Positions 13,063 to 43,500 of a stretch of 64,000 nt of DNA are shown here, piece after piece. The notes under the pieces were generated by a model that worked only from the letters and a program-made list of their open reading frames with translations, did no database searches and had not been told where the DNA came from. The translations under genes and the position numbers were made by a program. The DNA is taken from positions 45,632,001-45,696,000 of the forward strand of contig CM060734.1 of NCBI GenBank assembly GCA_030704615.1, read 5' to 3'. This DNA comes from Takakia lepidozioides. Lineage: Eukaryota; Plantae; Bryophyta. Each line of letters opens with the position of its first letter. Position 1 is the stretch's first letter.

Positions 13063-16000
13063 CTACTTTTCATAATCCATCACACAACGGATGCACCCTC
13101 CTTTATTCAGAAGTTCGAATGCCTGATTGATTTCAGAAAAGGGCAGCTTGTGCGTAATGTAATGATCCAGATTGATTACCTGCACCACAAAAGCAGATGC
13201 CAACAGCATTACGCTACAGCACTTGAGCAGAGCGGACGGGGTAGGGACACGCGTTGAGTCACACTGGCAAGCATGCTTTTGTAGTGCAACTACCTTACAC
13301 TGATGTGACACTGCCAGCCAACAACATAGTACCGATAGAAATAAACTACATAGAGAGAGGAAGCAAGAAAGAAATGTACTACCAAGTTCATGGAGGCGAG
13401 ATTGAGTGATTAGAGGAAACAAAGTCACTAAGTCAAAAGGGCAGAGCATGAAGCTGGATTCTAAATTGCAAACTCTGAATAGTACAACTATCTGTTTCCC
13501 ACAAGAAACATACCCCTTTTATGCACTTATCGACCAGGTCTGGTAGCTCTGTCCGGCCTCTGTACCCTCCAAAGAGTCCAGATGTCCACACGCGCCCCCA
13601 CAAGAGTGAGCCTGGGTGGAATGCAACCCTTTGTGACGATTCCACAAGCCCTAAGATCACTGAAACTCCCCCACCCTGTTCATGCCCATTTTTAGCATTG
13701 CCAACATCATCTCCCCCATCTTTTTATAAGGAGGAATAAGGGCAAAACTGCAGATCAAACTCTACTAAAATCCTCGTCCCAACATATGATAGAAGCTATA
13801 AAGGGAACTGCCGAAGAAATGAAGCCACCAAGGCACTAGAAGAGACCCCAAGGTCCAAAACAAAGCCCAGAGCCCTTGGGAAACAAGAAGCCCAAGCTTC
13901 TCAAATAGTGATGAGCACAAGCCACCTTCAGAACCAAAATTCAGAAGATTATTCTTGTCTTTGTCATTCTTTCTTCATTCTCTCTGCCCATCTTTGAGCG
14001 ACTCAAGAACAGGTCCTCACACCCTACAGGTTTACACAGGAGATGGAATAAGAAAGTAGGATGTATCCAATTCGTTCCAACGGAGGAAGTGGAGACACAA
14101 CATTTCTTCTTCTCATGGCCTGTACTATAAGATGCAAGGAAGACAATGGTGTCTTTTGAGATTCAGCTCGTCCCTAGCAGAGTCCTTGAGTTTTGAGAGC
14201 CCGTAGTTCTAAGTGGTTTTTACCTGCATTTGTGCAATGTTCGGTGTTATTTTGTACTGTGGTTCTCCTGTGTTCTTCTACTCTTTCCCATGGGATCACC
14301 ATGAACGTCATACAGTTTCTTTCTTTCTCTTTCTCTCACTATCGCCACAAGGCTACGGAAAACAACGTCTTATGAGTACATTCTTTCTCTCACTAGGTCC
14401 TTCTGTCTCGCACACGTTGCTTGATTACTTGAAAAATTCATCTGCATGATGCAACTTCAGAAAACACCAAAACCAACGTTATCATGGGAGTGAAAGAAAT
14501 GGAAGAGTACCGGTTTGCAGCACTCCAAAGCAGAGGAGATGACCCCAGGATCCCCCGTACAGTCAAAGCTATAATCCACCCCACCATCTGTCATTTCATT
14601 GATAACCTGTTCCCACAAAGATATACCGAATGATAAACGCGCAATCTTTGACTTGGCTTCTTTGTTCATGAGCTTAACAGAGAAGGAATAGTATTATTAT
14701 GTGCACAGAGACCCATAAGACCGAAGTGGCCATGAGAAGAAAAACAGAAACCATCAAACCCAAACAGTGTATATTAAGATTGAGAGAGAGTACTCATAAG
14801 ATTTTGTTGGGAGAGAGGGAGACAGAGTGAGAGAAAGATAGAACTTTATAACGTCCACAGGAGATCCTGAGGGGGCACACGGGCAGGGGACAAATGGGTC
14901 AAGCAACAAGGAACCACTTCAGAAAGCATCAAATGACAACAGACACAGGAAGTGAGAGACATAGAGAATATATTCATAAGACTTTGTTTGTCATAGCCTT
15001 GTGGCCTCAGAGACATAGAGCGAAAGGAAAATAGCAACTTTATGGTACCCACAAGGGGCCAGAAGGGCCCATGGAAGGGACAGATGGAAAGTAGTTTCAG
15101 TTCTGACAAACCTTTTCAATGGGCTTGTCAAATGCATTTGTATTCAGTGTGTCTGTCAGCCCAAACTCCATCGCTGCCACCCTCCCGTATACACTTTCAG
15201 TACTTCTACGCCTGGTCAAGCCCACTCATTACACATGTTTAAGAGAAGGGAAAATTAGCACTTCTTAGTCCAGCCCATCCCGACATACCGCGTGCAAGTT
15301 TTCCGGCATCTCTGGCAACTCCAATGATGCGAGATGCCCCAGATACCTTTGCGGCTTCCACTACCTGCAGACATAGGCAACTGGTTCACCACAACACTTC
15401 ACAAAAGAATAATAGAAAAATCCATTGCTACCTTTCAGTCTTTATGAAAACTCCAAAGATGGACTGTAACATTATCTACTAACGAGACCAAATTGGCAGC
15501 AGTAAACTTTGACCATAAAGCTGTCTTGGTGACCCACTCCTCCCGCTGTTTTCATGACAGCAATGGCGTTGAAGTTATGGGAATCCAAAGAACATCTCAA
15601 AGCTAAAGAGTGACTATTTCCTTGTGATGGAATGTAACATTGCTTCCTTGGACTGATCCAAAGAGAAAAGAAAGCACTTACAGCAAGGCCAATAGTTCCC
15701 AAACCGAACACCGCCACCGTGGATTTGGGGTGTATTTTTGCAATCTTCCATGCCGATCCAACTCCTGCATGCATGAACATGCAGAACAGGTAGACAACAT
15801 GTGATGTAAATACAAGGTGAATAGACATGAAAAGCATGAACATTCAAAAGTTGAGTGGGAAAACTGGACAAGAAGTATGTAATGATATTGACCTCAAAAA
15901 ATGAAAAGCTGGCCAAGTGAACCTATGCAGGCTGGATATTCTGGCAGAAATAGAAACTTTACTACATCCACTGCAAGCCAGAAAGGCCTATGCAAGCAGA

Positions 16001-40500: not shown

Positions 40501-43500
40501 CCTACCTTTGAACAGCAAACAGAAGCAGAGAGGAAAGGGAGAGTGCAATTGCCCGTTGTGTGGGCAATCTGAAGACAGTATTCATTTTCTGATACACTGT
40601 CCGGGGTTCTCTCACCAAAGAGACGCTCTCTTCAAATCTATTAAGGGAATTGTGCCTGTACCCCTGTTTACCAACTTTGAAAGTCTCGAGGCTGAGCCAA
40701 AAGCCCAGGCCCTCCTGAGGCCTAGTTTTTGGGCAAATCACACACAGCAGATTGATGCTTGTGTGAAGGGATTTCTAGAGGATATCTGGAAAACCCGGAT
40801 TAATTCTTTATATGGAGGTAAGTCTTACTACCAACGTCAGCCCCTGACAGAGGTAGGTTCTGTCCCTTTTGTTCCCGATCAAACTGGGCGCGGGGTCAAT
40901 GGCCACAAGGCTACGGCAAACAACGTCTTATGAGTACAATCTTATGGCATGTGGAATTGGTCAGAAAAATGTCTTGGTATATTCTTAGACATATGAAGTA
41001 TATTGTGACATTAGTGTCTCACATTTGTGCTATCTCGTTATAGGATTATGCAGCTTTATTGGAGTGTCTCGTCTCTTTGCAGAAAGATGCGTGCTATCAG
41101 CTTACTGTCACAGATTTGTGATCTCTGGAGGGTATGGCATGAGGTGTAGAGAACAGACAAGGGTGTGGTGTGAGATCCTTTGGATCAACCCATGACACAA
41201 TTTTTGATGGATTGCACCGCAGGCAATTTTGTACGTACGAACAGTATATGCGTTTGCCAATGAGACAATAGTAAAATATGCTTTCGCAAACGCACTCCAA
41301 TCTACTCTACGTTCCGGGATACAAATCAGTCTTGTCCAAGGGCTTGGACTGGGATTTGTTTATGGTATTGCCATCTGCTCATGTGCGCTGGGATTGTGGG
41401 TGGGGAGGTTTCTTATCACACATCACACAGCAAATGGTGGCCAGATTGTTATAGCGATATTTGCCATCATTCTCAGTGGCTTGTAAGCAATCCTATCCTG
41501 AAAGAGAGTAGTTATTTATTCCCCCTCTCCCCTTTCCCCTCACCCTTCTTTTCATACCCTCTTTCTCCCCTGAACGTTTCGTTCTTTCTTGTCTCAAATG
41601 TGGCGAGTTGAAAAGTTAAAAAGTTGGCTTTTTGCGTAGATTCAAGTCTCTGAAAGTCAAACTTATGTCGATTTCTTGATTGTGATAGAGGTTTAAACCA
41701 GGCGGCGACCAACTTTCAGGCTTTTGAGCAGGGGCGGATAGCAGCATATAGACTATTTCAAGTGGTAAATCGGAAGTCTCCATCAACTAATAGTGGAGCT
41801 ATTGGAGGGAACACTCTAACAGATGTACATGGCAACATAGAGCTTCGCAATGTCTACTTCAGCTATCCATCTTGCCCGGACGTACCTATATTAAGTGGGC
41901 TTTATCTTACTCTCCCTGCAAGAAAGACACTGGCACTTGCAGGAAGCAATGGTTCTGGAAAGAGCAGTGTCATTGCCCTTATAGAGCGCTTCTATGATCC
42001 AACACTCGGTGAGAGCATGATATTATTTCTGAACATGATTATTGTTCCCTTCTCCCCCTCCTCCAGATTCTCTTTTCTTCCTCTCTCTGTGTCTCTCTCT
42101 CTCACAGGCCAACGTCTTATTAGTACAATCTCTCTCTCACAGGCCCAAGGCCCTCATCCGGCTTACAATCTTTCTCCATAGATTACAGGCCCTTCCACCC
42201 AAGGGGCTCGTGGCAAGGGCCCTCGCAACATCTATGAGGCTCAAAGCTGCAGGTCTCATGAACTCCTGGTATGCTCGAGTGGACAGTTTATTCCAACGCA
42301 ACGGACTCTCTTCTGCTTCCCTATTACCAATGAATCCAGATGAGGTGGACATCACATCCAGACATGACCGTAACAGACTCATTAGGAGAGAGCTTATGGA
42401 ATTACATGTCAAGAGAACTTGGAAGCTACCCAATCTCACGACAAAGCTCCACTTCTATCGAGAGACATTCTGGGTGCTCCGAGATGATAGAATCTTGAGA
42501 CCAAATTACCTTTCAGCATCCTTATCTCCTTCCCTCCTGAGGGCAGTGGGGCGGTTCAGGGTGGGTTCCCACAACCTACGGATAGAGACTGGCAGATGGG
42601 AAAACCTGCAACAGGAGGACCGCCTATGTCCAGCTTGCATAGGGCGCAGCCAGGAAATTGAAACTGAAGAACACTTCTTCTTCTACTGCCCTCTATACTA
42701 CGAGATCCGTGGGAGATTCCACTGCTTATTCAGTGGAACCCAAACTCTCACTGATGTCTTCCACGATAAGGATCAAAAATGCTTGGCAGCCTACCTGCAC
42801 GAGGCCTTCACCCTTAGACAATCGCTAGAACATTAGTTCTTATTCTTGGGTTCTGGATTTGTTCCTCTCTCATGTTTTCTTCCATTTTGTCCCATAAGCT
42901 CTATGAGCTTTCTGCGGATGTTATAAAACACCATTTCATTTCATTTCTCTCACACACAAATATAGCCCTAACACGTACAATGCGATAGTGTCTGAATGAA
43001 GTTATCAAGCAGTACATCAATAACTGTATCTTGTGTGTTTAATATCTCACCATATTGCCCTCTTTCTGAATTACAGGTGAAGTACTTTTGGATGGAGAGA
43101 ATATTAGGAACCTTCGGGTGGAGTGGCTGAGGGACCAAATAGGGTTGGTGAGCCAAGAGCCAGCTCTCTTCGGTGGGAGTGTTCTCGAAAATATTCTCTA
43201 TGGTAGGGAAGCTACCATGGATGAGGTCGAGGAGGCTGCAAAAATAGCACATGCCCATACCTTTATCAGCTCCCTTCCAAATGGTTATGAATCGAAGGTA
43301 CTCGGCCAAGCAGTAGCTGGGTTCTCAGGTGGCTGGGAAGGGAAGAGAGGTGAAAGGAGAGAGAGAATTGGGGTGAGGATAAATGGACATCAATGACTGA
43401 AGGGCTGTGCATATATATATGCAGGAAGGCAGACGTTCAACATTAAACTAGTGGGAGATAGAGGTGATAGGAATAAGAAGTAGCAAGAGACTTGGAGGCA

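Follow-up and report, generated by a model that had tools for sequence, protein, structure and literature searches.

The 64-kb window analysed here (the whole stretch of Takakia lepidozioides DNA presented above, 64,000 nt of contig CM060734.1) contains, besides longer copies of a resident long interspersed nuclear element (LINE) that we call family A, four pieces of only 18-42 nt that correspond to the very 3' tail of this element and lie in introns of an alcohol dehydrogenase (ADH) gene and of an ABCB gene. Their matches and flanks support the conclusion that they are extremely 5'-truncated products of target-primed reverse transcription (TPRT) of family A, and they are probably independent insertions in which synthesis ended within a conserved handle at the 3' end of the RNA. 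Four such pieces, three of them within 700 bp, had been reported in a first-pass annotation of the sequence and are borne out by their coordinates and tail matches; the claim that they are retrotransposition products likewise holds, given their intact 3' ends, the target-site duplications (TSDs), the shared target ^TCTYT and the presence of a source LINE in the same window.

Four tail-only insertions of a resident LINE

Family A has a single open reading frame (ORF) with an endonuclease and a reverse transcriptase (RT) and ends without poly(A). Its full-length copy in the window carries the APE-type endonuclease and RT domains (Exo_endo_phos_2 match, E = 1.5e-6; RVT_1 match, E = 9.5e-22), with frame breaks interrupting the ORF, and the element ends at 40939, 6 nt beyond its stop codon (40931-40933). 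This source copy, the four tail-only pieces (tips 1-4) and the duplications found around them are as follows:

36078-40939, + strand: full-length family-A LINE with a 10-bp TSD (TCTTATGGCA) at 36068-36077 and 40940-40949
14342-14381, + strand: tip 1, 40 nt, 38/40 identical to 40900-40939, tail score 35, in the ADH intron on the 3' side of the ~14470-14620 exon
14328-14341 (left) and 14382-14395 (right): TSD of tip 1, exact, 14 bp (TCTTTCTCTCACTA)
14967-15008, - strand: tip 2, 42-nt spacer, tail score 25.5, in the ADH intron on the 5' side of the ~14470-14620 exon
14955-14966 and 15009-15020: TSD of tip 2, exact, 12 bp (AGAGACATAGAG on the + strand)
14789-14808, - strand: tip 3, 20 nt (20-22), 17/20 identical, followed by a TC run, tail score 12.5
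42111-42128, + strand: tip 4, 18 nt, 17/18 identical (17 templated nt and a terminal A), tail score 15.5
42094-42110 (left) and 42129-42145 (right): TSD of tip 4, exact, 17 bp

Apart from point changes, each of the four tips extends to the very end of the element, GAGTAC(A)(A/T). Tip 1 is made up of TC (or of T and a G-to-C change), 37 templated nt and a terminal T, while tip 2 consists of 2 extra nt (GA), 38 templated nt beginning with the GGCC of a hairpin described below, and TT. Exon positions, which were taken from separate ORF pieces and not from a spliced model, place tips 1-3 in the two introns that flank the ADH exon at ~14470-14620 and tip 4 in the ABCB intron behind the Walker-A exon, which ends near 42008, about 100 nt from the start of that intron. 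The TSDs of 14, 12 and 17 bp given in the first-pass annotation are exact in all three cases and adjoin the inserts without a single intervening base, and the piece listed there as 41 nt at 14968 is present, with a spacer that measures 42 nt. No convincing TSD accompanies tip 3, whose flanks share only a 7-bp low-complexity CTCTCTC repeat, and both its duplication and its exact 5' end are uncertain; a reading of this tip as a 39-nt insert bounded by TCTCTCA was rejected, as the extra 19 nt have no match to the tail. We regard three tips as certain insertions and tip 3 as a probable one with an uncertain 5' limit. Tips 1 and 2, with different TSDs and on opposite strands, are independent events.

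The relationship of the tips to family A was assessed against chance in several ways. A 14-mer pattern of the tail with at most 2 mismatches has 11 matches in the window where 0.46 are expected; six of the 11 are the 3' ends of longer family-A copies, and the short pieces appear among the matches at 14367 (+), 14789 (-), 14969 (-) and 42114 (+). Matches at 17740, located in an ADH exon, and at 37515, antisense within the LINE, were discarded as chance, and a long copy ending at 52581 as well as a decayed one near 34116 exceed the 2-mismatch limit of the pattern. When a 3'-anchored tail score was computed over 300 dinucleotide shuffles of the window, the score of tip 3 was expected 0.027 times per shuffled window and that of tip 4 was reached in 0/300 shuffles, and all four tips are therefore real family-A homologs. 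A blind scan of the whole 64 kb for exact direct repeats of at least 11 bp separated by a 12-70-nt spacer returned only 11 pairs, three of which are the tip TSDs and most of the others tandem arrays. Searching the window with the hairpin sequence gave no additional copies, and 16 matches of metagenome contigs to the 17-nt core of the tail were rejected as chance, having neither upstream homology nor TSDs.

The target sites give the same picture from the other side of the junction. Each of the eleven family-A 3' ends in the window is succeeded by TCTYT or a sequence close to it, which argues that the endonuclease nicks opposite N^TCTYT. The 1-kb bins richest in this motif are those at 42 kb and 14 kb, both of which hold tips, and the clustering of three tips within 700 bp can be put down to the 14-kb bin being one of these two. 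The TSDs of longer family-A copies measure 10 and 16 bp, and the 12-17 bp of the tips fall in a similar range. Possible microhomology at the 5' junctions amounts to 0-1 nt, with an A at tip 1 and a C at tip 4; tip 2 has 2 extra nt, and the upstream target ends of the three TSD-flanked tips are mutually unrelated.

Tip 4 lies beside a fragment of a second LINE family, B:

42142-42945, + strand: 5'-truncated family-B fragment with a 9-bp TSD (TCTCTCACA) at 42133-42141 and 42946-42954

The TSD of tip 4 spans the 5' junction of this fragment and takes in its first 4 nt (GGCC), so that tip 4 must have entered this pyrimidine tract later and as a separate event. Across 42094-42954, two LINE families have accordingly used one TC tract, family B first. 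Tip 4 also lies 1.17 kb downstream of the full-length family-A copy, in the same orientation and with the same unusual terminal A (most copies have T), and may be a local re-insertion from this neighbouring full-length donor. Just upstream of the tip 1 TSD, at 14304-14330, a 27-nt stretch is 74% identical to the end of the tail and a TC run; it may go back to an earlier micro-insertion, since decayed, through which the landing site was renewed, or the resemblance may be due to chance.

A conserved terminal hairpin and the starts of the tips

The 3' end of the source copy can fold into a hairpin, for which tail positions are numbered from the last A of GAGTACA:

40895-40917, + strand: terminal extended hairpin of the source copy, outer stem GUC/GGC, inner stem UGGCC/GGCUA with loop ACAA (40900-40913)

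The inner 5-bp stem and the 4-nt loop occupy tail positions 39-26, the outer 3-bp stem widens the hairpin to positions 44-22, and a G+C-rich helix lies directly upstream. All 8 pairs are kept in 8/8 tails, including those of three public ENA contigs (L017, L018 and L019) that hold the nearest protein relatives fetched, with 43-60% RT identity. In these relatives both partners of the innermost pair differ (G-C in place of C-G), as does a single partner of one outer pair (C-G in place of U-G), and in a comparison of ten tails 91.5% of the cells are paired, versus at most 39% when the partner columns are slid. Judged from these alignments the hairpin is deeply conserved, with modest support from covariation, and by analogy with stringent-type LINEs it is likely to be a recognition handle for the RT, a role that we treat as putative.

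The starts of the tips fall around this structure. Tip 2 starts at position 38 (GGCC), behind its two extra bases, and for tip 1 the start is either position 39, if one base change is allowed, or position 37, behind two extra bases; the 40-42-nt tips start 1 nt apart, on base one or two of the inner 5-bp stem, and 6-7 nt short of the upstream helix. The start of tip 4 is position 17, where one base may be microhomology, and that of tip 3 is position 20-22; measured in the 3' direction, the 5' ends of these 18-20-nt tips lie 4-9 nt beyond the inner stem and 0-5 nt beyond the outer 3-bp one. The geometry proposed in the first-pass annotation, with a long class at the 5' arm of the hairpin and a short class just 3' of it, is thus confirmed by the start positions. 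As microhomology at the junctions does not exceed 0-1 nt, joining by microhomology does not explain the coincidence of the starts. The position of the tip ends at a conserved hairpin is suggestive and would fit stalling at the 3' recognition handle of the LINE. Short copies also make up a considerable part of the family in the window, where 4/11 of all 3' ends and 4/9 of the independent ones measure at most 42 nt (p about 0.06 for the latter under a log-uniform length null).

Several observations weigh against a structural cause of the stops and against two separate size classes. There are only four events, one of them with an uncertain 5' end, and with four draws chance would yield two pairs as tight as these at p about 0.006-0.17 and would bring the closest two starts within 1 nt of each other at p about 0.13-0.44, the value depending in each case on the null that is chosen; taken by themselves, two plus two events are not significant. 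The hairpin is small, and the 90-nt tail folds no better than its shuffles (z = +1.17). Covariation is represented by a single compensatory pair, probably one evolutionary event, and the tail is coding (it holds the last 11 codons), so that the protein may explain some of the conservation. Finally, about 89 kb of a relative's genome from one ENA sample (L017, L020-L022) contained 7 tails and no tail-only piece shorter than 100 nt; the behaviour is not evidently general, and the sample is too small for an argument against generality. Within the window the case for two discrete classes is weak: of the earlier proposal that TPRT aborts at defined structural points, the TPRT origin and the relation to the hairpin stand, and the discreteness of the classes is unproven at the chance values given for two pairs.

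Proposed mechanism and alternative explanations

In the reading that we prefer, the endonuclease of the element would nick the bottom strand opposite 5'-N^TCTYT-3', and the freed 3' end would prime cDNA exactly at the 3' end of an RNA bearing the family-A tail, which could be the LINE itself or any RNA with the same last ~40 nt (the tRNA-like head of a partner short interspersed nuclear element, SINE, was looked for in the 64-kb window and not found). Synthesis of the cDNA would halt after only 17-39 nt, the top strand would be cut 10-17 bp downstream, and the short cDNA would then be attached to the upstream end, the junction having either microhomology (0-1 nt) or additional bases (0-2 nt). 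What follows the early stop, cleavage of the second strand and joining of the ends, would be of the ordinary kind and would therefore leave normal TSDs. One stop would lie just before the hairpin (positions 17-22) and another at the inner 5' arm (37-39), sites that would be compatible with an enzyme blocked a few bases before it reaches either of the two helices, or a protein sitting on them. We infer that the hairpin would act both as the RT-binding handle and as the cause of the stops, with an enzyme that struggles to clear its own RNA-binding site and the adjacent helices, in a way comparable to abortive initiation.

A more far-reaching version can be put forward only tentatively. The last 38-41 nt, that is the hairpin and the 25-nt tail, might form a discrete minimal unit of retrotransposition, arising either through failed clearance of the handle or from a handle-sized, protected RNA template, and the genome might then hold thousands of hairpin-bounded intronic micro-insertions at TC tracts. 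If this were true, the 5' ends at positions 37-39 and 17-22 would amount to an in-vivo footprint of the protein on the RNA.

Among the alternatives, the one that survives best regards the tips as ordinary 5'-truncated TPRT products drawn from a smooth and steeply 3'-skewed length curve, the classes and their relation to the hairpin being a coincidence of small numbers. With four events, with size classes that were picked after the data had been seen, and with chance values that under narrow nulls rise to 0.17 for two pairs and to 0.44 for one pair within 1 nt, we hold this explanation to be a serious rival, though possible rather than probable: tips 1 and 2 are independent and yet start 1 nt apart, and among the family-A copies of the window none is sized between 42 and about 330 nt. 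If the tips were only the short end of such a curve, they would represent ordinary LINE biology at an unusually fine scale.

It is unlikely that the template was instead a short RNA of ~38-41 nt comprising hairpin and tail, released by nuclease trimming around a bound protein or by specific processing, and that the enzyme simply ran off its 5' end. Reverse transcriptases add untemplated nucleotides on reaching the end of a template, and the 2 untemplated nt at tip 2 (GA), and maybe those at tip 1 (TC), could be understood in this way, as could a start that matches the 5' edge of the conserved inner hairpin. However, extra nucleotides are also typical of end joining and are therefore ambiguous, the 18-22-nt pieces do not contain the hairpin and so cannot come from a fragment protected by it, and an Rfam search of the LINE and its tail returned no match to a ribozyme or small-RNA family. 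A short RNA template is a weaker alternative than early termination of TPRT.

We consider it very improbable that the 5' ends were set by microhomology-mediated joining of the upstream target end and the cDNA and not by RNA structure. Microhomology is well documented at the 5' junctions of truncated L1 insertions (PMC11702581), but the tips offer only the 0-1 nt mentioned above, tip 2 has 2 extra nt in its place, and the upstream ends are unrelated to each other. That the tips are chance matches, or remnants of longer copies after later 5' deletion, is scarcely credible, for although two of the eleven 14-mer matches are chance and tip 3 has no convincing TSD, the shuffle tests rule out chance for the four tips, and a deletion would have had to stop exactly at a TSD boundary three separate times.

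Relation to known LINEs and further content of the window

LINE copies truncated at the 5' end often outnumber the full-length ones (PMC3747384, PMC13295347, PMC11702581); they are usually described as 100-1000 bp long (PMC3747384), and new L1 insertions have a median of 712 bp (PMC11702581). The tips are an extreme variant of this known 5' truncation. They share with the "dead-on-arrival" copies of L1, CR1, RTE/Bov-B and other elements the intact 3' end, the variable 5' end, the TSDs, the target motif and a source with APE and RT, and differ from them in measuring only 18-42 nt and in having 5' ends beside or at the edge of a conserved hairpin instead of spread out.

With regard to the hairpin, the closest parallel is found in the stringent-type L2 LINEs, which cannot do without a 3' stem-loop and bind it through the part of the protein that lies between endonuclease and RT (PMC1636434, PMC4176376). 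UnaL2 of eel and ZfL2-1 and ZfL2-2 of zebrafish resemble family A in lacking poly(A) and in carrying a conserved stem-loop near the 3' end. Family A is, however, RTE-like and not an L2 element, it has no terminal short repeat, and its hairpin lies inside the last codons of the ORF, the binding being putative here. Like RTE and RTE-X elements, it combines a single ORF for APE and RT with an extremely short 3' untranslated region, and one database match was labelled as an RTE-derived "craniofacial development protein 2"; a protein search with a piece of the family-A RT gave no match above 60% identity. We describe family A as RTE-like by architecture, which is not a phylogenetic placement. The short AT-rich 3' repeat of RTE and RTE-X is not found in family A, which ends without a repeat, whereas the tails of the three relatives end in (ATT)n. 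In these relatives the 3' RNA module is located at L017:13396-13469, L018:12726-12794 and L019:3930-3998, in hosts that are apparently non-plant (neighbouring genes include sulfatase, NIP7 and BROMI). A module common to a moss-type LINE and to relatives in distant hosts points either to great age of the handle or to transfer across distantly related hosts.

To our knowledge, few LINE elements other than L1 have been studied biochemically, and if the stops are hot spots, micro-insertions of this kind would show, to the single base, where the RT of a non-L1 LINE stalls on the very RNA that it recognises. Repeat annotation does not report pieces as small as these. The suggestion made with the first-pass annotation that repeat maskers would miss such micro-insertions is plausible and fits the 4/11 family-A ends of at most 42 nt, and a genome with such a proportion would be under-annotated. 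As each event duplicates 12-17 bp of an intronic pyrimidine tract, the landing site is renewed and introns would slowly be remodelled.

The longer family-A copies in the window, all of which run on into the ORF, comprise in addition to the full-length element:

52208-52936, + strand: a stack of two family-A-like copies, both 5'-truncated, with 3' ends at 52581 and 52936 and, for the latter, a 16-bp TSD (TTCTCTTTCCYCTACT, 1 mismatch)
49187-50517, - strand: family-A tail copy (50167-50517), then one cut short at position 2202 of the full-length element (49187-50140, with internal deletions)
34060-34116, + strand: old, decayed family-A-like 3' end, ~73% identity, 5' limit uncertain

The composite arrangement of 49187-50517 recurs at 63323-63905 with similar flanks and is therefore attributed to segmental duplication, not to independent insertions. 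At 52830-52975, a 28-nt segment internal to the LINE (starting CTACTGGAGTG) turns up again just beyond the copy that ends at 52936, behind its 3' end and TSD; this repeated segment may belong to an older copy, nested or rearranged. The 5' part of the full-length element contains three tandem units of 141 bp (36843-37266).

Family B is also represented by tail-only copies of ~120-140 nt with different 5' ends, at 51148-51275 (-) and ~62990-63075 (+). A 10-bp "TSD" considered for the copy at 51148 was rejected, the repeat being internal B sequence. By its content the window is plant DNA and not human. Its ORFs include PPR, 2OG-dioxygenase, ABC-transporter and F-box sequences, a protein search with the F-box ORF giving no match, and the ADH gene, of the zinc type, is represented on the minus strand by exon-sized ORFs. 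An interstitial repeat of the plant telomere type, (TTTAGGG) x 4.9, is located at 29425-29458.

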